Of a DNA stretch of 64,000 nt, positions 2,362-59,728 are shown one piece after another. A program made the translations under genes and the position numbers. Position 1 is the first letter of the stretch; each line of letters opens with the position of its first letter. The notes under the pieces were generated by a model. It worked only from the letters and a program-made list of their open reading frames with translations, was not told the origin of the DNA and searched no databases. Origin of the DNA: Lepidodermella squamata (taxonomy: Eukaryota; Animalia; Gastrotricha); assembly GCA_047495785.1 (NCBI GenBank), contig JBLDXI010000017.1, positions 1,550,001 to 1,614,000 on the forward strand, in the 5' to 3' direction.

Positions 2362-3779
2362 CTAATGATCGTGACCTCGGTCAACCGCGGTTGCAAGTTG
2401 ATACCCCAGCGACACAAGTTGGTCAATTTGCGGATTACTCTTTTTCGACTCCGTCCTGTTTTGACCAGCCTGATTAGCGTTATTCGGCCTTGGTCGAAAT
2501 GAAAATGAAAACGATCGACCACCCTTACCGCCCCTCAGGACCGTCCTGGGCGCGTGGTGGTACCCAGCTGGAGTTGGCTGGCTTGGATTGTTGTTATTGC
2601 TACCAGTGGGGTGATGAAAACCCCGTTTAGGTGTAACCATAGAGCCGGCTAATCGCTCCATTAGTGCCTTAACACTTTTCGCCTTTGAATGATAATAAGC
2701 GGAACTCGCGACTGAATTGCCGAGCGTAGTCGCAGTTTCCCCATAAGTCAAGCCGGACATGTTTCGCGTTGACATAGAGCTGGTTAGACCTTCTGACGTT
2801 GACAGGGTAAGCGGAACTGTGAATCTAAGGTGTCCGGAAGTAGTCGATCCAGTATCATCCTCAGTCGCCCTATTCGCCGAGGTCATTAGTGAGCTATTAG
2901 TCTCACTCAGGCTAGTATGACGTCGCCTTTGCCCATCAGTTTCTTCCTCATCCAAATTATCGGTAAAGTAAACCCGTCCAGGGTGGCTTTTCGGCAGAAA
3001 AATTCCATACTCGCGAAAAAGTAGGTCATCAAATGTATCAAAACGATTGTAACGTCCGCCGACCATGAACGTGTGATAGGTATACCCCTGTGGCGACCAT
3101 GTGTCTTCAATATTGGAGCCTTCGAGAGGTTCCTCGAGTAGAGTTTTCATTGGCAACATTGGCGCTTTCAGGCGTTTCCCGTTTTCTCCAAAAACCAGGC
3201 CAGCTCTTTTCCGTTCCAGCTCATCCAAGGCGTGCTCTTCCCCGGCGCCGTACAGGACATTGGCGCCTTTTATCTCCGTGCTTTTGCGGAAGTCGAAATA
3301 GTTGACGTTTCCGTCGAAAGGGATAGCCGGGTTGCGCTCTTCGAAGGTAACAGTTTTACGCTGTTTCCCACCATGCTGCTGACGATTCATTATCCCGGCG
3401 TCAATTTCGTCCCCACTTTGGGCCGTAGGCTCTGCGGATAATTTACGCACCGGGGTGTTCCATTTTGGTAGTTGTTTCATAATCGGCTTAGCCGACTGGT
3501 GAATAAAATAAAATAAAAAATGCTTTACATTTTCCAATTTTTCTCACATTTTTCAGCTCCATGAGATCAGCGCTTTTAATCAATTGCCTTGTAGCTGGAT
3601 CGATAAGGTGGTGGGGTAGTTGTGTCAGTGGGTGGCCGCGCCCTGTCCATACTCGATCGTGGACCTACAAACACGTGAGATGATTTTTAGCATATAAATC
3701 ACAGCGTAAATCCCACCTTTTTGTGCAAATCGTCCCAGTCCCCTGGGAAAAAGACTTTGTACGGCGTCAAGGGCAGCAT
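2362..3779 (-). CDS. Uncharacterised ~440 aa protein (exons 3779-3717, 3664-3548, 3495-2362)
   Basis: 391-codon ORF extended in frame by two phase-0 52-nt GT-AG introns; S/T- and G/N-rich low-complexity C-terminus; no recognisable domain; start uncertain. Confidence 0.6.
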
Positions 3780-4130
3780 GTGGCTTCGATCGGGCGGAAA
3801 AGGTGTGTTCTGTTTAGAAAATTAAATGAGATAATTTATAGAAATTTCACCATAATCGCAATACAAATTGCGAGAAAGCGATTTCGATGTACGTATAATA
3901 AACACTAAATAGCAGCAGGTGAGCAGCATAGACGCTGAACTGGTCGTCAAGGAAGTGCTTTCGTAATGGAAAATTTGTTAAAAATTTATTTGGCTATTTA
4001 GCAACTAAGAGTTGAGGGTATGAGGAAGTCGCACGTATAGCGCTAAAGTTTTTTCTGCGCCTATTTTTTTGATTGCCGCACAAGAAGCCCTCAAAAACGG
4101 GAAATACGGTGAGCGAAAAGGTATACAGTC

Positions 4131-5497
4131 ATGGTAATTATTAATGGCTTTAAATAATTATAATAAAATTAAAAGATGCCATCTCATTGGACGAATTTCA
4201 CGACAATGGTATGGCAATGTTTCACGCCTAGGAGACATCAGTGGCGAAATCCTCAAAGCATTCGACAAACGATTCATGATAACATTCTAGCTGAGCTATC
4301 GGTAATATTATTCGCCCAATTGAACATAGAAAACTCACCCGAAAGAGAATGCTTTGAAAATCAACGGTCGGCATTTTTCCGATTTCTATATAATATAAAC
4401 TCGCCTATATCCGAGAAAAATCATCATCACAAGAAACCGGTTATCTTGTTCTGCTGTAGTAGACGCTAGTATTTTACTAATATTAATAAATTATTAATTA
4501 TATTAATATTTGTATGGGAGCAAAATATGAATCATTCAATTCTTCGTGATTTCAATAGCAGCCGAAGTTGCGCTCAAAATTTAATGTAGCATGTCAGAAA
4601 GCTGCTCTATTGAAAATGATCGCGTTAAATCGTGCGTTTTATTACTTCGTGCAGGAGAATAAATTGTCTGCCGAGCAAATCGAAGGTAAAACACGAATTG
4701 CATGACTGCCGTTGTCAGCTGCAATTATCATTATTCTAGTCAATAATTGTAAACTCTGGAGAATTTCTACCATTTTTTCACCTATAACCATATTCCGTTG
4801 GCTACGCCATTCCGCTGTTCATAAAACATTCAAGAATCGAAAAATGCCATGACATTTTTATTGATTGATTGCTTTAGAGCTGGAGGAAGCTTTCAATTTA
4901 TTTGACAAGGACGGCGATGGCACAATTACGACCAAGGAACTTGGGACAGTCATGCGATCCATGGGGCAAAATCCTTCGGAGAAAGACCTTCATGACATGA
5001 TTAATGAAGTCGATATTGACGGTTAGAATCAGCGTTACCTCTAGCGCAATTTAACTTGCTTTATAGGCAGTGGAACCTTGGATTTCATCGAATTTGTTCA
5101 GATGATGACTAAGCAGGCACTGCAAACCGACCCAAACAAAGAGGTTTACTTCATGAATGTTTCGCGATATTTTTTCTGACTTTTTTCGAATTTCGTAGGC
5201 AAAGGAAGCCTTTCGAGTATTTGACCGAGAGAACACCGGAAAAATCGCTGTCAAAGATATCGAAGAAGTTCTTATTACCATTGGTAATTCAATCTCAAAT
5301 TATTGCTAACCATCTGTTATGGTTATTTTCCAAGGGGTGTCGACTGCTGAAGCTGCTGAAATTGTGGCAGAAGCCGATTTCAACCGCGACGGTTACATCG
5401 ACTTCGAGGGTATTCCCATTTTCGTTATTCATTTTCAAATATTTCTAGCGATTTGTTGTCAGAATTCGAGCAGATGCTTACTCCTCTTACTAAGTGA
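4131..5497 (+). CDS. Calmodulin-like EF-hand protein (exons 4131-4133, 4655-4685, 4878-5021, 5067-5143, 5199-5283, 5335-5409, 5463-5497)
   Basis: Spliced product [69 protein letters not shown]...; ATG-only first exon as in calmodulin genes; too divergent to be canonical CaM. Confidence 0.85.
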
Positions 5498-24574: not shown

Positions 24575-25804
24575 ATGCCAGTGCTGCCGCCAACGGAGGC
24601 TAGCGCAGCGGCATCAACTTCCGCGTCTGGTCTCGTTCTTGCTACCGGTGGTTACGATTTTTCTGTCCGATTATGGCAAGTTGCTACTGGTGCTTGCGCA
24701 AAAGTTTGTCAACATGCCGAGTCTCATGTCGTAGCTCTAGCTATCACACCTGACAGACGCACGGTTGCCGCTGCAGGCTTTCAAGGAATCAGGCTTTACG
24801 ACACCGTCGGATCAAGCCAGGCTCCTACAAATAGATTCGACCGCCTCCCGAAAAATGTTATGTGCGTTGGATTTAACAAAAGTGGCCAATGGATGTATTC
24901 GGGTGGCGAAGATGGATTCGCTCGAATTTTCGACTTGCGCGCTCGCCCTGGAGCAGCGCCTGCTGGCCATTGTTGCCTGAGAGTTGATCGTCCTGTAATG
25001 TCGATGGCACTTCATCCTACGAAACCCGAAATGTTTGTCGGAGTTCAGACTGGCGGTATTCACGTGATGGACTTGCGAACTCTGTGGAATGAGGAATGGT
25101 CGATCGAGGGTTCTGAAGTGGCTATTTTATCACTGTCGCCACATCCATCTGGTCAACTGTTGGCCGCTGCGACGAGTGGTGGCATGATTTACTTGTATAC
25201 AGTTGGCGATGCTCTTCCATCAGCCGTTCAGTCGCCTCGGGAAACTGCATTACCTGGCCAAGGGCAAAGCAGTGGAACAATAGGCTCTGTATCCCAACTT
25301 AGTGGCAGACCATTCGCTTTACAAGCTCACTCTCGGCACGTTCTGAAATGTGCTTTCAGTCCAGACGGTCGCTTCCTTGCTACAGTATCAGCAGATAAGA
25401 CTGCTAAAATCTGGCGAGTGTGGATGAGCAAATCCACCCCTTCAGCGGCGCAATGCGTCGACAGCAATGGCGATATTCCTCCTGTTCAAATCGGCGCAAA
25501 TTTTGTTTGTGAATTACCGCACCCAGCTCCAAGGATGTGGATTTGGGATTGTGCATGGGCAGCCGATTCGCAGCACATCTTTACAGCTTGTGCTGATAAT
25601 GTTGTTAGGCTTTGGGTTCTACCTCCAGAAGTTCTAAATGGAGTTGCATCGTCCCCACCTTCGCCATCGTCAGCATCACCATGTGCTACTCCGCCGAAAG
25701 GAGACTCAACAAATACACCAACTTCGGTTCCACGAGCCACGTTGGCGCTCGAGTATCACGGCCATCAAAAACCCGTTGTTGCTTTAGCATACGCCGATCA
25801 TTAA
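24575..25804 (+). CDS. MLST8: Target of rapamycin complex subunit LST8 (WD40), intronless
   Basis: LATGGYDFSVRLWQ...CQHAESHVVALAITPD, WMYSGGEDG, LKCAFSPD..LATVSAD, WIWDCAW, EYHGHQKPVVALAYAD. Confidence 0.92.
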   Translation: MPVLPPTEASAAASTSASGLVLATGGYDFSVRLWQVATGACAKVCQHAESHVVALAITPDRRTVAAAGFQGIRLYDTVGSSQAPTNRFDRLPKNVMCVGFNKSGQWMYSGGEDGFARIFDLRARPGAAPAGHCCLRVDRPVMSMALHPTKPEMFVGVQTGGIHVMDLRTLWNEEWSIEGSEVAILSLSPHPSGQLLAAATSGGMIYLYTVGDALPSAVQSPRETALPGQGQSSGTIGSVSQLSGRPFALQAHSRHVLKCAFSPDGRFLATVSADKTAKIWRVWMSKSTPSAAQCVDSNGDIPPVQIGANFVCELPHPAPRMWIWDCAWAADSQHIFTACADNVVRLWVLPPEVLNGVASSPPSPSSASPCATPPKGDSTNTPTSVPRATLALEYHGHQKPVVALAYADH

Positions 25805-26028
25805 TCACGCGCCAAATTGAATTGGAAAATAACTCGGTTCGTAAACTTAACAGTGGCTTACGCGTTTCCAATGAGATTTTGACGCCTGTAAGCTATTTCT
25901 ATTTGTATAAAACTGCACTTGGTGCTAATCTTCTTGCGATTGTCTAATCTTATATATCATCATTTGAGTATGAAACATATTTTTAACATTCATTTCTTTT
26001 CTAATAGCCGTTTTATTTTAAAATTATT

Positions 26029-29000
26029 ATGGTCGAAAAAGCCTTGACAGACTTGAATTCGCAACTATCGGTTGATTGCACAGACTTTTTAAATGTAAGT
26101 TTTTTTCATGATGTGCAACGCGCTAATAATTGAATGATTATTTAAACAGGAAAAATTTGACGTCGATGGCTTTATCGTGAAACATCGTCGGAAAGTTACC
26201 CTTGAGAGCTTGAAAAAGGATCTACAAGTCGTTTCAAAGTACCTCAAAAACGCGGTTGTCGAGACAGTGAACAACAACTACACAGAATATGTCAGTCTTT
26301 CGACGAACTTGGTCGGTCACGATAGAGATATCGCCTCGCTGAAAACATCTTTCTTCACACTATCAACTCGGTTCGATTCGGTGATCAAACGTGTCGATAA
26401 GTTGAACACCGACGTGGATGTTACTGCTCAGAAGTTGGACCGGCTTGCTAATTCGAAAGACAGGATTCGCAGATCGCGCCATATTTTGATCACGCTCGAC
26501 AAATTGGACTCCCTTCATTCCAGTCTGTTGACAGAAGGTCAGAATAGCCCGCAATACATTCACAATTTCGAACGTCTTTGCTGCAACTGGGCTGATTTGC
26601 AATGGCATCTAACAGTATACAGTGAATTACCTGTGGTTTCCGCTCAAAAAGACCGAATTTCGCGGATAGTTGACTCAATTCAAACTTACGTCGAACGTCT
26701 CGTTGTCAATTTCGTGCAATCTAATACGAACAGAGACTTATTTATAAGCTGCCTTCAAATTTTGGCGTTCTTCAACCGGAAGCGGTTCGTGGAAGACGTA
26801 ATCAGGCGAAGAATATGCAGACCATATCTCCGCGATGTGATGACTGAAGACCGTCTTCAATCTTCCAATTTAGAAGCTCTTTTCTCAGATCTACTCGACT
26901 TTGTTTCGGAAAACGTCATTCCGATCCACATTCTCGCTACCACAATCGATAATGCACCTAATGATTTCATTTCTCGGTCGTTTTGGCTGGAATTCGTATC
27001 GCAGCTGGATTCGCCCAATCTTCGAGGCCTTTTTACTGTAGCCGACCCTGCGATTTTTCATCGCAACTACAAACTAACCCTCAAATTCGTGAAACAAGTG
27101 GAAGATTGCTTGAATTCGAAAAGTTCGCATTCATCGGCAAAGTCGATGACCTCATTTCGCGATTCTCAATGCTACGAACAACTAATGTCGAAATGGAATC
27201 TAGCTGTCTATTACCAGTTGCGGTTTCAAGAAATTTGCGGGCGACTCGAGAGTGACCTTGCTGCGACTCAAACAACATTTGCGGCTGAAAATTCTAGCGA
27301 ATCTTTTTGGTTGGATGCGACAAAAGCTGTTAATACCGCACTTGACGAGTTATGGAATGAAGAAACCGTATTCATAGCAGCGCTGTCTCATCGGTTTTGG
27401 AAACTATCCCTGTTAGTCCTGCATCGTTTCGCCGCCTGGATTCAAAATCAGGTTTGAAAATTTCCCACCTTAATTTATCTAAGAAGAGTCACGGCAAAGT
27501 CGAACTTGGGAGTAATTCAGAAGGTTATGATGAGTTCAACCGCTACATTCGATCTATATGATACGATTTTAAAACTCTGAACCTGCGTTCCTTCATTTCC
27601 GACTTGCATAAAATATTTCTTCAATTTATTTAGTCTGTAGATTTTATTGAAAATGACAGCGACAGATGACGAGGTGAAAGAGGCCTTGAAGAAACTGCAA
27701 GAAAAGACGGAAACTCGCGTGCTCTTCCACAACCATCTTATTTCTGTCGCCCTTGCGATTTTTCTGGTAACAGTCGGGTTACCGGTATGGTGGAAAGCCA
27801 CTGAAACAAAACGAGCTCCGTTGCCTTATTCGGAAATTGAAACTTTATCTGGCTCAGTTTTACACGTGAATTTCACTGTCGAGATTCTGAATTTCGACAA
27901 TCTAGTCAAAGATAAATCCGATGCGTTGAAATCGCTCCTGTCATCATCTCTAGCAGCTAAATTTTCTTCGAGTAAAATAGAGTTCGAGCCCGTTGTGAAA
28001 ATCGATACTTTCATTGCTCGAATTCACGATCTGAGAACAATGCCCGATGCAAAAGAACTCGAAATCAGGTTTCCCGATAAGTTCAAGTCAAAACTTGACG
28101 GTTTCGGTATCAAAGTCATTCTGGGCGAGAAATCGTCTTTCCCGCAGTGGGCCTCGCATGAATTTGTGATCAATGATGCGATTTTCGTTGAAACAACTGT
28201 AAATATCGACGAGTTATCCAACCGAATCGTCACAGTTTTGGACAAAAATACCCTTGGTTTTGCGAATGTCCGAACTGCATTGGGTCTTTCCGGTGCCACG
28301 AATGGTTACGTTACGTATAAATCAAGTCCAGCCTACGATATTACACTGACACTTGCTGTTTGCGACCCATCTCGCGTTAAGGTCACCTGGGACTCGAACG
28401 AAGCGATTCGCCAATATTTGGACCCAATGCTTGCACCGTTGCGCAAATTTGTAACTATCAATGTCGCATCTCAATCGCTATTCTACATGGATCTTCAAAC
28501 CGGTTTCTTGACATCAGGCAAAAATTCGATGACTGTGGATAAATTACCGCTCGTTCGCAATCAAGTCGAAAGCCGTTTGTACTCATTTGTCTCGAACAAT
28601 CCGCAAATTCAATTGATCGCTTACGTGCCTTGTAATCCGGAAGTTCCGATTTCTCTGGAAGATGAAACTGGTAACAAGGTCGAATCGAACGCTTTTATTG
28701 CTCCTCGTTGGGGTGGTATTTTGTTCTACGACAAATTTGGTGCTAAAAAGGACGAGCTAACCATTGATAACGATGTGGTTATGCCTATTTTTGGCGTTCA
28801 ATTGCTTCAATTACTCGGACTTGACACAAAAACTGAAGAAAGTAACGCCATTCCACATATTCCACTTCAAAAATGGTTGTTCTGGCGAACTGCTGAAAAC
28901 ATCGCTACTTCATCTCAGACTTTGGTTTCCCTCATCGAGCTGCTGGAAAAAGTGAAAAACATGGTTATCAGTGAAGAAATTGCATTCCAGGTAAGTCAAA

Positions 29001-30639
29001 ATGTCCAACTATCATTTAATTACCGGCCTAAAATGATGAACAAAACCGCTACATTCGATTTAAATGATAAAATATCTAAGCACCTGAATTAAATTTTGAA
29101 GAAATCGTTTCCTAATTATTAGACTTGTTGATTAATTCGTCCATTCCATTTCAGGTTGCTCAATCGGTTGACTGCATTCACACGGCAATTGGTCACTTGA
29201 AAGAAGGCAACATTGAACAGGCGTTTGTTCAATCTCGTCAGGCCTTCGCCTTCTCTGAAAAAGCCTTCTTTGACCCTTCTCTTCTTGGTCTCCTCTACTT
29301 CCCTGACGATCAGAAATTCGCAATTTACATCCCACTGTTTTTACCTGTCGGCCTTCCTCTTGTGATGTCTGTGTTTGCTGCTTTTAAATGGTTCAAAGCT
29401 CAGAAAGAAAAAACGAAGACGGAATAACTCACTGCTGAAGGAACTTTAAAACCTAGCGTTTCATGTGTTTATCATAAAATTATTATTCTTACTTTTTCGT
29501 GTGACGAAAAAATCCCGACGTTCGACTTTGCTGTGACAATTTTCTCATCCAAAAACGAATTTGCAATACATTTTCTTTCGTTACAAATTTGTATTTTTAT
29601 GCTAGGCTGAAGCTGCGAAGAAAAATGGCTCCTCCTCCCCGTTTCTTATGCTCGCGACCTATTTACTGGCGGACTGGAGGTCATATCAACAAGTCGTGGA
29701 GAACACGTTGTTGGCGAAAATTTTCGCCCTCACCGATGCTTCCCCTGAGGGACGGCAAGTTTTGCGAAGCGCTCTCCGAATCGCCACTGGCCACATAAGC
29801 ACGGCAGTCTCTGCTTTTGTCAGTGCTATTGCAGCAAATCTAGCGAAAGAATGCGCCGTTCCTCTCAAGCACATTCAAGATATTCCTCGTTTCTACCGCA
29901 AGATGAATCGAGATGTAAAGTGCTAAATATTTTTGTGAATTCCTCCTTAATTGTTTTAATTTTCCAGGCTCCTACAAAGCCATCGCAGTATGTATCGCTC
30001 GTTATCAAGCCGCTGGAAGACTGGAATTCGAAAGCGAATTCGGTGCTAGATAGCTCAGAAATCGAATCGTTCCTCCAGAATGCAACTAACGCATTCCTTC
30101 CCGGGCTTTACTCATCAGTTAATGATCAAATGCAATCTGTTCGAGTTATGGAGGAAAGTCTACGTCGTCTTCAAAATCGCCGCGCCAAGCCTTCTACTAA
30201 CAATCTCCAGTCATCAGGCGCACTGAGTGATGACGATAAGATTCGACTCCAGCTTAAAATCGATGTTGAAATTCTATTTGAAAGGGTTAGAAATTCGAAA
30301 CTATGGAAATGAAATTTTTTTACCTATCGTTTTCAGCTCTCGGCTTTGAATATTAAGGTGGACTCGGAAGATGCGGTGCAAGTTTTACAGCTCTTTTCGA
30401 ATGTTAACAGCCAACAGTTTTCCAAAATTTCTGCCTCGGGAGCGGCAACTCCACCCCCTGATGGTGTTCTCATCAACAATAACCTCGTTAGCGCTCAGGA
30501 GAATGAATGGCGCGGTTCCAACTCGGATCTTCTATCGATGAATGTTCCCAACTCTAACGGCAATAACGGAGCCAGTGAATCGCCGAACGGGCATTCTAAC
30601 AGCAGTAATGACTTGACCGCCCTCAGTGTGAAACAGTGA
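26029..30639 (+). CDS. COG2: Conserved oligomeric Golgi complex subunit 2 (exons 26029-26094, 26150-27451, 29606-29914, 29968-30285, 30337-30639)
   Basis: FDVDGFI..RRKVTLESLKKDL, NNNYTEYVSLSTNLVG, KWNLAVYYQLRFQEI, HRFWKLSL, DIPRFYRKMNRD-APTKPSQYV, MEESLRRL, SDDDKIRLQL; ~765 aa when spliced across the 2154-nt intron. Confidence 0.92.
27527..27580 (+). ncRNA. Box C/D snoRNA copy A (orphan guide AACCGCTACAT)
   Basis: ATGATGA 27527, CTGA 27577, AGGT/ACCT terminal stem, internal D'/C'-like TCGA...ATGATA; paralogous to 29033-29087; 60 nt upstream of the AG at 27639-27640. Confidence 0.75.
27653..29427 (+). CDS. PIGS: GPI transamidase component PIG-S (exons 27653-28990, 29155-29427), nested on the same strand in COG2 intron 2
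   Basis: GLPVWWKATETKRAPLPY, NAFIAPRWGGI, TLVSLIELL, SEKAFFDPSLLGLLYFPDDQKFAIYIPLFLP, basic C-terminal tail. Confidence 0.93.
29033..29087 (+). ncRNA. Box C/D snoRNA copy B in the PIG-S intron
   Basis: ATGATGA 29033, CTGA 29084, shares AACCGCTACATTCGAT-TA-ATGATA with copy A; flanking ATTTAATT/AATTAAAT stem; 67 nt upstream of the 3' splice site. Confidence 0.75.
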
Positions 30640-31363
30640 TTATGGACTAATTCGTTGATTAAATTATTTAAAACGCCGTTCACTTGTTGTGCGTTCCTTA
30701 TAAAGTGTAATGACCACTACTGTTATAATTATACTATTGTTTCAGCTTGATACGATGTCACCTTCAAAAGCTGCGTTAAAAACCGCTGTTATTCTCGGCA
30801 ATGCTGCTGCTGTGTTTTCTTCTGTGATAATACTGACTGAATAGACAAATTTTGTGGCTTGTGGATGGATGATAAAATAATCTTATTATTCAACTGTCTC
30901 AGTGGCAACGATTTGTGGCAATTATTCTTGTGAAGATGGAAGCTACTAACGCACCGACACAAGGCGTTGTTTGCGTTGTGATTTATCGGCCATAATAACA
31001 ATTAACTAGGAATTAAGGTGTAACGGTTAAAGCGGCGTTTTCCTTCTTTATTGATGTTATAATGGGATAAATATATGGGTGAAATATATAATGTTTTGTC
31101 CGATGGATAAATCGGATGTTCGCTTCTTGAAGCATGCACTGCTTTCTAATTATATAAAAATATTAATATTGTGACTTGAAAGATGATGAAGAACACCATA
31201 AAATTACTTTTGACAAGAATACGTTTTTGTTTTCTTTAAAATTTGTAGGTGTTAAAAACAATTGTCAGCCCGAGCTGAGCGTTGAAGAGAAGAGTTGTCC
31301 GAGTGAAATTATCGAAGATTTTTTTCAGCTAGCTCAATTTTTTAATTTCTAGTTATTGATGCG

Positions 31364-33642: not shown

Positions 33643-34798
33643 ATGATTATGAACAATAACGGCGCGCCTAACGAGCGCAATTTTGACCCATGTTACACGT
33701 TTGTCGGAGGTGCTCAGGTGGTCCCTCCACAAACGCCGAAAAACATTTCCGACTCAGTTGATATTTATTCGAGAATGGGAGTAGTTGCTGTTTATACCGG
33801 GAAACACCTGAGAGAAGGCGACATTCGCAAACCTATTTCAGCCGTTGCTATTCCAGAGCGAGATTTAATCGCAGTAATACACAATGGTCGCCTGATTAGC
33901 GTAAATTATCACCTTATGTTTAACATTTTTTGTGTAAAATATTGGTTGACAGATTTTCAATTGTACAACGTTTCAAATTGAAGAAACTTTCGTCGTTAAA
34001 GATCCGGTTGGTTTCCAGGCCACGAGAGGCCTTCGAGGCGAGCTGGTAGCCGATAATGCCGACTATTTATACGTAACAAGCGAGGGAGCTGTTTCGATTT
34101 TTCGCTTCAATTTCCGCCAAGTTCGCGACCCTGCTAATGTTCACCCTGCAATTTTTGCCTCAGTCCCTGAGAACACGTCACGTTTCTTCCGCGGAATGGC
34201 TATTTCGCTGTCTCGAAAGCTGTTTTTCACAGCGTATGGCAAGGAAATTTTCGCCTTCAACCTCGCAAATGGGAAACTGATGAATCGATGGGATTTAGCT
34301 GAAGAATTCACTAGCGCTTTGGTTCAAGCAGCTGTCGACATGCACCTAGGCCCTAATCTACCCCCTCGAGTATTTTTGGTCGCAACTGCCCTGGGTGGAA
34401 CTAAAATTTTCGGTAAAATCCTGAATTTTGAGGGTCAACCTGACAACACGCCTTGCCAAGTCATCGGCCGTGATTTAGTGGGTGGTCTCGGTCAAATACG
34501 CCACTGCGCTTTCGACGCAGTAGGTAACCTGATTTGCGCCGATTCAAAACGACGAGTAATTCACGTATTCCCTCCATCAATTTCCGGCTCGGTTGTTTCA
34601 TTCGCACCGCCTGAGGAGGATGAAAAGACCCTGGAATGGATTGTTGACTTGAAAAACGAAAGCATCGACCGAGTTTTCAACCCTTCATCAGTCGCTGTGT
34701 TGGTGGATCCGCTGTCGAGGCGAAGACAACCGCTGGTGGTAGCAACCGATTTTTCGCTTGACGCGCTTGTATTTTTTGCTCCTGAACCTGTTGAATGA
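33643..34798 (+). CDS. NHL-propeller-only paralog 2 (exons 33643-33900, 33953-34798)
   Basis: IRKPISAVAIP..AVIHNGRLIS|IF with the array's shared intron; AFDAVGNLICADS; no Zn-finger domains. Confidence 0.75.
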
Positions 34799-37312: not shown

Positions 37313-39707
37313 ATGGCGTGTAAGCGAAAACTGGAAGATTTCGACTTGGAGTATATTTTTCAGGTATACCTGCGTTATAATTACCACCCTAATGACCTAT
37401 TATAGGCATGTTTTGCTGAATTAGGAATTAATTAACACATAAGTGATTTTGCCTTATTTAAAAAATCAATAGTCAAGAAAAATATTGGTTTCAAAACTTC
37501 ATTTTTCAGAGTGTTCAATGCTCGATCTGTCACAATCTGCTGAATAACCCCAAGCAGCTTCCAGATTGCGGCCACTGTTTTTGCCTCAGATGCCTTATTG
37601 ACTTTCAAGCTCAGCATCACGGCAATACTAAAATCGCGATTAAGTGCCCCAATTGCCAGTTGATGAATGAGCTTGGACCGCGTGGTTTAGATGGTAAATA
37701 TTTATTTTATAATTTCAAAAAATTGATAATTTTTTGTTTCCAGCCATACCGACTAATGCGAACCTCTTAGCCTTGAGCCATCATTTCAGGCAGGTGAAGA
37801 AATACCCACCAGTGAAAACGCTCGAGTTGATGCCTCCATCAAACGGCAATTCAATATCAGTTGAGGCTATCCTCTCGCCCCGATGCGTAACCTCGGTTGG
37901 GTTTTTTGGCTCAAGCGTTACGTATGATATTCCCCGGTGCCGCTCGGTTGCTGAAGGTCGCTTAAAAGCACCTCAAGCGGATGCGAATAGCTGCTCAAAT
38001 TTGGACGCGACGAATCTGAAGGCGAAAATTTCCAATCTCACGAAACGCCTCATCCAACTGCCTGATTCGAACTCATTACTAAATGCCGCTAATGAAGTTT
38101 TCAACAAAATTTCCATCGACCTGGAGACGTTCGAACACAATGTTGCTCACTACGTCATGGAGTGCTATGGCCACATCTCAAAAGCGATGGAAATCGACGG
38201 CGAGAGGCTGGTTGAGGAGGCTCATGGCGTTGCGCACGGTGAGACGAAGCGCATCGAAGCGCTGATGCAAAAATGGGACGAAAATCATCGCATCGAAGTC
38301 ATTAAAAATATGGAGCAGCTGTATTTCGATTTGAAGAGGCGATTTGCGACCCAACAAAGCATCGAGATTGTTTCTGCTACACACGAATCTCTGACTCAGC
38401 TCGAACAGGACTTGAATTTCCTTGAGAATCTATGCAAACCTCTTCCGAACGATGCGATAATACAATTCAGACCCTCGGAAAATTTCTCATCGATGATCGG
38501 CACCATTGGCGATTCGTTGAAATTGGGTGACGTACTTTCGAAAATTTCGCTGGCTTCAGATGAAACTGTCAAAGTCCGAACGCCTTCTCCTGAACAAATA
38601 ATTTTGATCGAATCTGACCATCCTACTTCACCGGCCTCTATTCCATCGCCTATGCCGTCACCGCTACAAATTCCTTCGGAAATACCTGTTGACAGAAGAA
38701 AATTCGATAAAGACTTTTACTCGAAGTTAACCGAAACTAAGCTGATTACAGGTAATGACGCCATAGGTTGGGATATTCGTAAGCCTATGGCTGTATGCGC
38801 CATTCCTTCAACGCCTCCAATGGCCGCTGCAATTCACAACGGAACCAGGATATCGGTGAGTTTTCTTCAAAACAATTGAAGAAATGAAAAAATAACCGAA
38901 ATTTTTCAGATTATTTCGCTATCCGGTGAAATCACTGCGACTTACAGGGCTCGTTACCCGGCTACAATGCAAGAACATTGTTACCTGGGAAGCCAGATCT
39001 GCGCGTCCAGTGACGGTTGTCTATTCTTCACTTCATTTCGAGATGTCGAAATCTTGGCGTTGGAAACTTCGGGAAAAGTGTATGCAAAGAACGCTGTCGT
39101 CAAAATTTTGGTTGAAACCTCGGTCGAAATGCCATTTCGAGGTCTTGCGATTAATAACGACCGTAGCGAGCTGTACACGGCGACTCGAGATGCAATCAGC
39201 GCTTATTCTACTATCGATGGAGCCGTGAAATTCAGCTTTGCTCTAAGGGACCCGTTTCTCTTCGGATCCTCATTCGTTCACACGAGTTTTTCTACCGAAA
39301 ATCTAGTTTCGATTGTTTTCACGTCGGGTGATGGGAAATGTGCTAATATTTTGAAATTTCGTGACATCTCTGATCTGGCCGAAACAGATTTCAGCGTCGA
39401 AGTGTTGCCGCTTTCAAAGCAAGTTCGAGCAGTTGCGAAAAATCAATCATTCTTTGCCTCGTCGATATCTAATATAATCAAATCGATAACCGTTGACCCG
39501 GTTGGGCATTTTCTGGTTGCCTTCACTAATGTTTTGAAAGTTAAAGTTTTCGAGCGAAACGCCGAGGAGCCATTTGCCGAATTCGCCCCGCCCGACGTGA
39601 AAGCGTCATTCACTGCTACGTTGGTCGATGACGGTATCAAGCCGATAGTGCTCGCGGTTTTAACCGTGTCGAATTCAATCTCGTTGTTGAGTTACGGACA
39701 AAAATGA
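37313..39707 (+). CDS. TRIM-NHL-like protein 4 (RING, degenerate or absent B-box, coiled coil, NHL; exons 37313-37363, 37510-37693, 37744-38855, 38910-39707)
   Basis: RING CSICHNLLNNPKQLPDCGHCFCLRC..CPNC; closest paralog of protein 5 (shared LLALSHHFR and NNPKQLPDCGHCFC). Confidence 0.8.
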
Positions 39708-55880: not shown

Positions 55881-57377
55881 CTATAATTTTGAAATCGCAA
55901 GTTCCGCCCTAATTTTATCAATAGCAGAGCAGGATTCTGACTTATCGATGTCTGACTGCAAATCTCGCGCTATAGCAGTGGTTGGCATATCTTTTTCAAA
56001 GCCTCGACTTGCAGCTGATTTTACGGGCGAGGATCTCATAGGGCTGCTGTGATACTGCTTTTGACGTGGCAGCCCGGCCCGTTTTAGCCACAGACTTTGC
56101 ATTATCGGGTTCAAGGTAGCGTCTAGGTAGATGAAGAACGAACAGGCGAACACTTGAGATGACTGTATTCTTCTTTCGTTCTTTTCATCCTGCGTCAGGA
56201 AGGCAGTAATGATATGCATGGGCAGGTTGGCGGCGAGAAACATGCCAAGCGAGGCTGTCATTAACCAAGCCAGCAACATTTCGCGCTTCCTTTTTCGCAG
56301 ACGCAACTTCTGCCAGCCATTTATTTCCGCCGCGTGGTTCAACGCGCCTTTCCTCTCAGTTTTCGATCCATTAGGCGTTTGATTAGTCGATTGATTGCCT
56401 CGTTGATGCGCGGCGTGGACAAATCTGAAAATTGACCTGTTCGGGCACGATGTAAACAAGACTCAATTAAAGTATTAGATTATCTTACACATAATTGCAG
56501 GATATCAGCAAAAGGGGGATGAAAAATGACGTCAGGAAAAAGAAGCTGCCAAAAATCCTTGTTTGTCGTGGGTCTTGTATAATAGCGCAGGCGAAGGGTC
56601 CAAAATGTCCTTCCCAGGTTTCGGTGGCGTTATCGCTCATATTAGCCATTAATTCACTGGTTTGAATAGGCTGTAGAGTAGAGTCTAGTGGGACAAGCTG
56701 AGCAACTTGAAGGTAGAAGAAAGGATATCCCCAAAACAGGAAATTGAACACGACCATGAAAATTACAATCGCAAATATCTGACCAACATTCAGCCCATTT
56801 CCTGAAAAAGCCATGTACAGGAAAGCACGATTAGCTGGAAAATTCTTACCTGAGCCCATCACGCTAAGGCGCCGTTCAAAGCTAATAGCTGTCATAGTCC
56901 ATATTGACATATTAAGCAGCAAAAGCCCACCCGCATTCAACCATTTGCAACCAAACTCCCCGAACAACCAATCATCACTCAGTCTAGGCAGTAACGTCCT
57001 CTCATGATTTACAGTATATTTATGAAATTTGCAAACCTTTGTAACCCCCGGAGAGCTCCCAACGTTGTGAATAGGATGTTACAGCTGACTAGAACTAGTA
57101 TAAGACATAGGAATTGCCTGCGAACCCCGCGCTCGTGAAAATTAATAGCCGCGGTGATGTTTGCTGGGAAACTGCAAAGCCAAACCGTTAGCATAACAGC
57201 GGCCTCGATTGCTCCGCAAAACATTGATTTGCGCCCAAACTGCTGGTGATAGAGAAAGAAGCAGTCGATTTCTCCGGCCGATGAGTTGCTGAGGTTTTCT
57301 AGAGCTTGTTGCGGTCTTAGGCATATCCACGACTCGTTGACCGCGGTTGGGCTTCCACTTCGCAGACAATACATCAT
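55881..57377 (-). CDS. Rhodopsin-class GPCR 2, FFAR4-like (3-4 exons)
   Basis: MYC..VNESWIC..DCFF..QQFGR..CGAIE; R|LSDDWLFGEFGC; ISFERR; LDATLNPIM; probable 48-nt in-frame intron near 56802-56849. Confidence 0.82.
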
Positions 57378-58409
57378 TTTGTCTTTGATACTCGTGAGCG
57401 CGACTTATTTTAAGTCCGTGAAGATATAGGGTAAAACTAATTTCCCGTACATCGGCCATCTAGTGCCACGCCCAAAATTGCAAATCTTATTAAATTTTGA
57501 TGATTCACGCGCGTGTGGAGTAATGATAGTTTTGATCAACCGATCTTATTTTTAGCCTTATTTCGCATAATGATTGGTAACCGCTGGGGATCGTCTAGCG
57601 GCAACTCCAACTCGAAATTTTTAAATTGCGCTCAAGTCTCATTTTACGCTCAAAGACCTGGCAGATGCGGAATATTTTCGTCACAATTACGAGGAAGCAG
57701 AGAAAAGGCGAAGTAATTGTCGCCAAACAATGTTGTGATTTTGGGTTGACAGTTGACAACAGAGCATGAAGCATAGTTGAGCAAACCCCGCAAATGCGCG
57801 TTCAGGTGCATATTACATGCTTCCATTTTTATCTTTTTCTTATGTTTACTTAGGGACGTTTTCAGTTCTTCAACTGATGACGCTTGCGCAGTGAAAAACA
57901 AAAACAAGGGGTACTATAGAAATTTTTATTAGCCTGCCATCTCTACATGTTGTAGTTCAAACAGGCGGATTGTCCTAATTTTGCGATGCCGAGGCAGCAG
58001 TGGTGTAATCAGAGGATTGCTGCAATACACACGTCAACACTGACAACTTAGCTAAAAAAGCTTAGCTCTGAAATCGATGAGTCTAATTTGCCACTGTGTG
58101 GAAAAGATGCACTCTTTCAAAACACATCATAACGCCTCCATGTAATATAGGACTCAGATTATAACTGTGGATTGTTTTTTTACGAGGGCCTACCGCTGTA
58201 AACGTGATCTTTATGCGCAAAAAACACAGGTAGTGCTGGCGTGTTTGTCCTTCCGGGATGCACCCTTTCCGGTAAATACTTTGTTGTCATTGATCAAGTG
58301 AATTTAAAAACCCCGGTAGATGCGTAGATATTTCTCACATTTTAACCTGAGTTTCAAACACTGTGTCACCTTCCGGTTGTTTTCATAGAAATATTTCAAT
58401 TCGTTTCAC

Positions 58410-59728
58410 ATGAATACCTGCTATGACTTCCATGGAGCAAGTTCCATCAACAAATCGTGGATATGCTTAAAAACTGGCGAAGATTCATCGGGTGAGGATT
58501 GCTTCTTCCTTCAGAATCAGCAACTTGGTCGCCCTTTCTGGTACTGCGGGGCTTTCGAAACAGCTGTGATGATCATTTTATGCTTCATTTGCTGCCCTGC
58601 GAATATCATCGCCATTCGAAATTTCGCCAGAATTCAAGTCAGTCGAGAGTATCTTTTCTTGATTACAGTCATCTGCTTCTCAAATGTTTGCTTGGCGTCT
58701 ATTGGTATCCTTCAGTCTATCGCTAGGTATAATAAGGAACTTCACAATTGAGAAAATGACTTTAATCACTTTTTATTATATAGGTCAACTGAGTCTTGGT
58801 TATTTGGCGCCCTCGGATGTGCAGCTACAACTGCTGGACCTGGTTTCTTTCTAACCCTGAAGCTGTGGACCTATGCTGTGATGAGCTTTGAGAGGTACAT
58901 TGGAATCTCATTTAAGCCATCCGCAGCCAGGAAACAGCCAACTGACCGCTTGGCGATCTTTGTTGGCGTCACTTTGCTCATCGTCGCCTTCAATGCAGCC
59001 ATTTGGATCTACCCGATAAGCTTCACCGAAGTTGTACAATTTGCTGTCGGCTCAACAGCCACACGACCAATCTACCTATGCGGTGTCATGACGTTCAAAA
59101 TGCCGCCAAACGATTTCTCTGTGAAGCTGATGTGCATGATAGTAATGTTCTCCACGCCAATTTTCCTCAGCATTATTAATTTCTCGTAAGTTTTAAGAAA
59201 TTTCTCAAGTCACCTATACTATAATTTACTCATCTGTTAAGGCGGATTGCGGTGATAATCTTTCGCGCAATGGATCCTGTGAGTAAGCGAGTGCTATCTC
59301 GATATAGCCCGGGGAAAATGTTGTTGAAAGACAGCCTGAGAATGAAGTCCCACCCATATTCTTGCTTCAAACGTCGTTGGGAATCACACCTGTCATTGCT
59401 GTCAGTTTTAGCCCTCATCGAATTCTGTCTATGCTGCATTCCATTGCTCGTTGCTCATGGCTTCGTGCGTTACGATCAAAACCGAACGATGCAATCGTCT
59501 ACGCTATTCGCTGCTAATTGCCTCGCCATCCTGAATGCGATTGCGTGCCCATTAAGCAAAAGCCTGGTCGTCAGGAATCTAACGAAATACGGGAATCGAG
59601 AGAAAAATGCCAAACTGCGTCGTCAGCAAGAGATCTTGTTTCAGCAAGCGCCCTTCGGTGACCCTTTCTATTATGAATCATCGCCACCTTATTCCCTGAA
59701 AGTTGCTGCGGTAGCAACGAAATCGTGA
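58410..59728 (+). CDS. Rhodopsin-class GPCR 3, FFAR4-like (3 exons)
   Basis: INKSWIC..DCFFLQNQQLGRPFWYCGAFE; R|STESWLFGALGC; MSFERY; TM7 LNAIACPL. Confidence 0.82.

Follow-up and report, generated by a model that had tools for sequence, protein, structure and literature searches.

A predicted RNA helix at the ends of a COG2 intron that houses an entire PIG-S gene

The locus described here lies in a 64,000-nucleotide (nt) stretch of the Lepidodermella squamata assembly (contig JBLDXI010000017.1, positions 1,550,001 to 1,614,000 of the forward strand; hereafter the window, with coordinates counted from its first nucleotide) and combines two genes of the secretory pathway, COG2 and PIG-S, the second of which is contained in an intron of the first, with two complementary segments close to the ends of that intron that are predicted to pair in the pre-mRNA. 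The gene models were derived from an exon-by-exon Pfam scan and from reading of the sequence. COG2, on the plus strand, consists of exon 1 (26029-26094, with the start codon at 26029), exon 2 (26150-27451), which encodes the COG2_N domain (PF06148, 1.3e-16) and the first part of COG2_C (PF12022 positions 1-86, 7.7e-23), exon 3 (29606-29914, PF12022 positions 106-202), exon 4 (29968-30285, PF12022 positions 204-300, 4.2e-22) and exon 5 (30337-30639, of which 30337-30636 is coding and the remainder is the stop codon). Three of the four introns measure 55, 53 and 51 nt, in agreement with the length of about 50 nt given in the original prediction, whereas intron 2 (27452-29605, GT..AG) spans 2154 nt and breaks the COG2_C profile between positions 86 and 106. 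The claim that this intron harbors a same-strand PIG-S gene, complete with both exons, is borne out by the Pfam models: exon 1 (27653-28990) matches positions 3-429 of PF10510 (8.9e-62) and exon 2 (29155-29427; coding 29155-29424, stop codon 29425-29427) matches positions 432-513 (2e-32), so that together they span positions 3-513 of the 514 in the profile. The two PIG-S exons, also on the plus strand, are separated by an intron of 164 nt (28991-29154).

Transcript evidence comes from two public sequencing runs, which we used in the form of assembled contigs from a strain that differs from the window by about 1%; one of the runs is RNA-like, with three GT..AG joints in its contigs, and the other is DNA-like and contains no such joints. 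COG2 intron 2 is precisely removed: an 886-nt RNA contig (depth 112) carries the predicted joint between 27451 and 29606, with GT..AG borders and 117 nt on the shorter side, and omits exactly 2154 nt. The two other joints, 26094 to 26150 and 30285 to 30337, connect COG2 exons 1 and 2 and exons 4 and 5, respectively. The depth of the COG2 junction contig is comparable to that of the contigs that cover the PIG-S exons (127-147), and splicing of the PIG-S intron is indicated by the loose end of an RNA contig at 28992, which corresponds to the start of PIG-S exon 2.

The longest inverted repeat of the region (27488-27510 with 29515-29537) joins the two ends of the gene-bearing intron. A 24-bp duplex that starts 36 nt past the COG2 donor and ends 68 nt before the acceptor, with one bulge and two G-U pairs, had been noted previously, and this description is correct in every particular. 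RNAduplex adds 6 pairs beyond a 2-nt bulge, resulting in a helix of 30 bp (27 Watson-Crick and 3 G-U pairs, two bulges, -44.7 to -46.5 kcal/mol) between a left arm at 27482-27511, which begins 30 nt past the COG2 donor and lies 142 nt 5' of the PIG-S ATG, and a right arm at 29513-29545, located 86 nt past the PIG-S stop codon and 60 nt 5' of the COG2 acceptor, both on the plus strand. The G-U pairs are G27493-U29532, U27507-G29517 and G27486-U29541; one of the bulges is C29519. The GC content of the arms is 50%, compared with 33% in the surrounding non-coding flanks. When the whole intron is folded with 60-nt flanks, the helix is part of the minimum free energy (MFE) structure, with pair probabilities of 0.72-1.00. 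On the sense strand, the three pairs that are not Watson-Crick are without exception G-U, and this strand forms the more stable duplex, by 6.8 kcal/mol (sense -44.7 vs antisense -37.9 kcal/mol).

To compare the duplex with chance, we used a strict pairing score (GC 3, AU 2, GU 0.5, mismatch -7, gap -8/-2); a more lenient score used at first was dropped, because its top values came mostly from long alignments with many gaps in GC-rich coding sequence. Under the strict score, the pair of intron flanks in the window reaches 50.5, compared with a mean of 20.6 and a maximum of 39.0 for dinucleotide shuffles, none of which, among 20,000, matches it (Gumbel p about 4e-7). Among 69,198 pairs of 200-nt tiles placed 0.2-6 kb apart on both strands of the 64 kb, this duplex ranks first. 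The comparison of duplex energy with shuffled controls, proposed as a check in the original prediction, likewise places the pairing beyond chance, with an RNAduplex z-score of -5.4 to -5.5.

Inverted repeats that bracket a gene-sized segment of 2 kb could also be a DNA-level element, either the terminal inverted repeats of a transposon with PIG-S as its cargo or sites at which recombination inverts the segment. We give this explanation almost no credence. The arms are single-copy in the 64-kb window, with no further copies at up to 3 mismatches (0 expected), so that the objection that they might be the ends of a multi-copy transposon family is unsupported; no target-site duplication was found flanking them; they are imperfect and bulged, and their G-U pairs favor sense RNA. 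In addition, as detailed below, the arm sequences differ between two species that share an identical insertion site.

Relatives of the locus were sought by an exhaustive HMMER search of 1.84 billion representatives and by a word-index search, both of which identified a single close relative of PIG-S, cluster P0001, at 58% identity. This cluster originates from two metagenome contigs of the European Nucleotide Archive, denoted L001 and L002, that are identical across the intron; a scan of JGI metagenomes detected no relatives, and the PIG-S open reading frame of the window itself was not on record. The window, L001 and L002 share the gene order LST8-like WD40, COG2, PIG-S, COG2. In L001, the COG2 intron (3096-5143, 2048 nt) interrupts the same codon in the same phase as in the window, with the preceding exon ending in CAG in both, and encloses PIG-S at 3279-4613 and 4677-4949, whereas the intron flanks of the two species cannot be aligned. 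The nesting of PIG-S is ancestral, because the insertion affects the same codon, the PIG-S proteins are 58% identical and the flanks have diverged beyond alignment.

L001 contains a terminal duplex of its own, between 3169-3197 and 4989-5022, that is, 73 nt past the donor and 121 nt before the acceptor. Its 26 bp fall into three blocks, a perfect one of 11 bp, then 10 bp after a bulge of 5 nt, and 5 bp beyond a U-U mismatch; the energy is -34 to -37 kcal/mol. For this pre-specified pair of flanks, 4 of 20,000 shuffles reach the observed score (Gumbel 5.6e-5), the RNAduplex z-score is -3.5, with 1 of 700 shuffles as low, and in the fold of the full intron the pair probabilities are mostly 0.8-1.0. 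In the predicted folds of both species, the helix is thermodynamically dominant. As to the covariation of the arms in related species that had been put forward as a check, L001 has its own duplex at the same topological position, but there is no column-wise covariation. The comparison suggests that the complementarity either persisted or re-arose while the sequence of the flanks was randomized. This is our main argument for selection on RNA pairing: both lineages have terminal complementarity despite randomized sequence, and the recurrence of a helix of unrelated sequence in the one relative known makes selection likely. The same finding renders both transposon ends and a passive scar of the insertion unlikely.

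The broader form of the latter explanation, under which the complementarity has no function and is due either to chance or to a decaying scar of the PIG-S insertion (for example, an inverted duplication at its borders), is in our estimation an unlikely one. In its favor, only two species can be compared, and aligned positions show no compensatory changes; the L001 duplex, which includes a run of TGA/TCA trinucleotides, reaches moderate significance; and the ends of shuffled introns also meet in MFE folds. Against these points stand the first rank of the window duplex across 64 kb on both strands, at p about 4e-7, the 4-in-20,000 outcome of the pre-specified test in L001, where the 11-bp perfect block is not of low complexity, and the exclusive use of sense-strand G-U among the non-Watson-Crick pairs of the window. 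Furthermore, the insertion is ancestral, and a neutral scar would be expected to decay in both lineages.

Two classes of known RNA structures appear particularly close to the COG2 helix. In intron 4 of Drosophila Nmnat, a stem formed by box1 and box2 loops out a proximal acceptor, a terminal exon and a poly(A) site (Raker et al. 2009, PMC2724269), and was proposed to act in two ways, by bringing the distal acceptor closer and by lowering the competitiveness of the looped-out site; the stem was demonstrated by compensatory mutagenesis, and the complementarity is conserved across species (PMC2724269). The resemblance extends to the siting of both complementary boxes within a single intron, close to the donor and 5' of the distal acceptor (at 30 and 60 nt in the window, and at 73 and 121 nt in L001), to the use of the distal junction (27451-29606), and to the presence of complementarity in both species, here with unrelated sequences. 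The differences are that the Nmnat stem loops out an alternative last exon of the same gene, of about 350 nt, whereas the unit looped out by the COG2 helix would be an independent and complete housekeeping gene, with two exons, a start codon of its own and a length of about 2 kb, and that the Nmnat stem is proven by mutants whereas the COG2 helix is known from computation.

The second class consists of the zipper stems of yeast, which start a few tens of nt past the donor and shorten the effective distance between the donor and the branch point in introns that are unusually long for a genome of short introns (PMC12350175; PMC2536676); such stems are enriched across species without sequence conservation, with linkers of 42-85 nt (PMC12350175). 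The COG2 stems of the window and L001 have the corresponding properties, starting 30 and 73 nt past the donor, with 30 and 26 bp, respectively, and pair probabilities near 1. Assuming a branch point about 22 nt upstream of the AG, the linker in the window would amount to 30 plus about 37 nt, or about 67 nt, and may fit the zipper range; that of L001, 73 plus about 95 nt, or more than 160 nt, falls outside it. Moreover, the yeast stems close non-coding loops of a few hundred nt, as opposed to a loop of 2 kb that encodes a gene. By analogy, the COG2 helix would be akin to the yeast zipper stems and to the Nmnat loop-out stem, and new in bracketing a whole gene.

Taken with these precedents, the findings make it moderately probable that pairing of the arms in the COG2 pre-mRNA yields a long-range helix that is under selection and turns the 2.1-kb intron, with the gene inside it, into a closed loop; its selected function is probably to assist splicing of the host gene. 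This looping reading is supported by the junction in the RNA contig and by the second species. The switch between COG2 and PIG-S put forward in the original prediction, with the helix hiding the PIG-S splice sites, is a further, hypothetical role. The spliceosome of this genome normally handles introns of about 50 nt, and the helix would fix the geometry between the COG2 splice sites, with about 90-100 nt from donor to acceptor. The whole PIG-S open reading frame is located inside the loop, as are two unpaired acceptor-like motifs (tttatttag and tctgtag, at 27626-27640 on the plus strand, 13-20 nt 5' of the PIG-S ATG) that we read from the sequence as a candidate trans-splice acceptor or alternative cis acceptor. 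With the arms paired, the loop or its base would take in the acceptor-like site of PIG-S together with its coding exons and 3' end, and on transcripts that retain the left arm, splicing of the donor to the distal acceptor would be favored over the signals of the nested gene. The right arm may overlap or abut the 3' end of the PIG-S mRNA, and pairing might also mask that processing site. The PIG-S mRNA itself might be derived from RNA that lacks the left arm, produced either from a start of its own or by spliced-leader trans-splicing at 27633/27640.

Several observations weigh against this reading. The helix is known from computed folding, and the RNA evidence consists of assembled contigs from a slightly different strain rather than reads; the segment 27450-27807, which includes the left arm and the 5' end of PIG-S, has no RNA coverage. 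In L001, the duplex is only third among the compact duplexes of its own 10.6-kb locus, and its linkers of 73 and 121 nt exceed those of the yeast zipper stems. The strand asymmetry seen in the window is absent from L001 (sense -34.0 vs antisense -33.3 kcal/mol), so that the original argument from G-U wobbles to pairing at the RNA level holds for the window, where all three wobbles and 6.8 kcal/mol favor the sense strand, but does not extend to the relative. The public data cover two species only, and base-by-base covariation is precluded by the unalignable arms. No canonical AAUAAA was found near the right arm in the window. Finally, shuffled introns behave similarly in MFE folding, with their ends separated by 2-49 graph steps. 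As to the predicted approximation of donor and acceptor, the helix sets a distance of about 90-100 nt in the model, but the ends are also close in shuffled introns, and because of this the shortened distance alone is not discriminating in silico. In these models, proximity of the ends seems to be generic for long RNAs, and the distinctive feature of the COG2 intron would be the single dominant stable helix.

The ends of the PIG-S transcript bear on a different role for the same helix. On the 3' side, an RNA contig covers 29375-29536 at an mRNA-like depth of 119.6 and terminates within the right arm, and 29537-29603 is devoid of any RNA contig; the stop at 29536 suggests the right arm as the end point of the PIG-S mRNA. 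Both species have a TTTAAA/ATTAAA hexamer 17-22 nt past the stop codons of PIG-S and COG2. For the window, this hexamer would set PIG-S cleavage 5' of the right arm, at odds with the contig extending to 29536, and in L001 an ATTAAA lies 10 nt 5' of the right arm. Within the right arm, the strain of the runs shows 0 differences from the window in 29513-29536, compared with three in 29490-29506, numbers that are too small to weigh.

Conceivably, trans-splicing at its 5' acceptor and cleavage and polyadenylation at its 3' end release the PIG-S mRNA from the precursor that also contains COG2, and the helix tethers the two halves of COG2 so that they can be spliced across the broken backbone; a single polycistronic transcript would then deliver both secretory-pathway mRNAs. 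The arrangement of the locus is compatible with such a process: in both species, the PIG-S acceptor-like site is preceded by the left arm, itself 3' of the COG2 donor, and the right arm falls between the PIG-S stop codon and the COG2 acceptor, the recurrent hexamer would direct cleavage in the window to a point before the right arm, and the COG2 and PIG-S contigs have similar depths in the RNA run. The same idea has been proposed as a hypothesis for human introns (PMC8052449, Fig. 7). We nevertheless consider it quite improbable. The contig of mRNA depth crosses most of the right arm, which places the arm within the PIG-S transcript and not past its cleavage site, and the L001 hexamer would set cleavage inside the arm; trans-splicing at this locus is putative, being read from acceptor-like motifs, and bimolecular cis-type splicing of this kind has no confirmed natural precedent.

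We also considered a chimeric product in which the N-terminal part of COG2 is joined to PIG-S, and rejected it. Such a joint is in frame only through the second AG (27451 to 27641), the route through the first AG (27634) meeting a stop after 11 codons; in L001, the corresponding segment (3254-3281) contains a TAA stop, and no such joint was seen among the RNA contigs. For these reasons, the fusion is not a conserved product.

The intron also contains two paralogous elements that resemble C/D-box small nucleolar RNAs (snoRNAs). Element 1 (27522-27587, plus strand) begins 10 nt past the end of the left arm, in the COG2 intron, and has a C box at 27527-27533, a D box at 27579-27582 and a 5-bp terminal stem (AGGTT/AACCT). 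It forms a direct repeat with 29033-29069, in element 2 (about 29028-29090, plus strand), which is located within the PIG-S intron, itself 164 nt long where about 50 nt is usual; the two share the C box and 16 identical nt (AACCGCTACATTCGAT). No Rfam family reaches its gathering score in the region or in the whole window; among the 12 sub-threshold matches of element 1, all below the gathering score, 10 are to C/D-box families, nine of them over the full length of the model, and element 2 has C/D-box matches below threshold only. No snoRNA counterpart was recognizable in the corresponding segment of L001.

With these elements in place, the helix could be thought to serve PIG-S or the adjacent snoRNA-like element and not COG2, for instance in 3'-end formation or termination of PIG-S, as a binding site for a double-stranded RNA-binding protein, or in snoRNA release. 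Such a role would suit the right arm, placed within the 3' region of PIG-S or at its end, and the left arm, which ends 10 nt 5' of element 1. Its probability appears to us very low: L001 has the helix but no recognizable snoRNA in the matching segment, the left arm lies upstream of the likely 5' processing site of PIG-S, so that the mature mRNA would lack it, and in both species the arms are close to the splice sites of COG2.

With regard to selected looping of the nested gene out of the COG2 pre-mRNA, same-strand nesting creates a conflict in RNA processing, in that the host has to read through the acceptor, the exons and the 3'-end signals of its guest, and at this locus the COG2 acceptor is 40 times further away than is usual for the genome. 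That the processing signals of a nested gene can truncate the host transcript, in a conflict that acts through transcriptional interference and intronic polyadenylation, is illustrated by H13/Mcts2 (PMC13309782; PMC3192792). That case differs from COG2 in involving promoter activity, DNA methylation and the choice of polyadenylation site; no bracketing RNA duplex was found for it in a limited literature search. In human genes, conserved complementary regions that enclose transcript 3' ends located in introns have been hypothesized to counteract premature polyadenylation or to keep the RNA from falling apart (Kalmykova et al. 2021, PMC8052449). This is a statistical association with a hypothetical mechanism, whereas COG2 is a single defined locus that contains a whole gene on the same strand, in a compact genome of 50-nt introns. 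Our limited literature search found no duplex that brackets a complete same-strand nested gene. The known answers to the conflict are promoter silencing or polyadenylation choice; the COG2 locus suggests an RNA-structural one and is compact, its parts being a pair of arms of 30 nt each, a single junction and the mRNAs of two housekeeping genes.

COG2 and its nested gene belong to a conserved same-strand cluster (window 24575-30800; L001 393-6099) that starts with the LST8-like WD40 gene and continues past COG2 with a further gene about 125 nt after the COG2 stop codon; one RNA contig spans COG2 exon 5 and extends into this next gene. Acceptor-like motifs can be read in the sequence shortly 5' of four ATGs, those of the LST8-like gene, COG2, PIG-S and the next gene, and the layout of the cluster appears operon-like. 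The LST8-like protein (24575-25801) is 35% identical to named LST8 and 70% identical to the L002 protein, and PIG-S is about 30% identical to named PIG-S proteins. For either protein, the single close relative is the one from the two metagenome contigs. The source is a fast-evolving metazoan, as shown by a rhodopsin-type GPCR, and public data contain almost no relatives of its lineage.

Two other inverted repeats in the window were examined as possible intron staples and rejected, given their location in paralogous genes and coding sequence. The runner-up to the COG2 duplex (57315-57341 with 58446-58472) is derived from two head-to-head paralogous genes, at 57121-57460 on the minus strand and 58410-58751 on the plus strand, that have similar N-termini and lie about 1 kb apart. 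The other is a perfect 17-bp inverted repeat (34243-34259 with 38017-38033; 3.7 kb apart, about 0.02 expected by chance) that falls in coding open reading frames of a cluster of RING, coiled-coil and NHL-like (TRIM/NHL-like) paralogs at about 33.6-39.7 kb, and is possibly related to the paralogy of that cluster.

Both sequencing runs contain, in addition, a second version of the sequence at about half the depth, with up to 10% differences in short patches (27463-27512, 28147-28200, 28528-28585 and 29721-29780), mostly at third codon positions, which points to a second haplotype or copy. The contigs of the DNA-like run break on both sides of the left arm (27463-27512), suggesting that variants are present around it.

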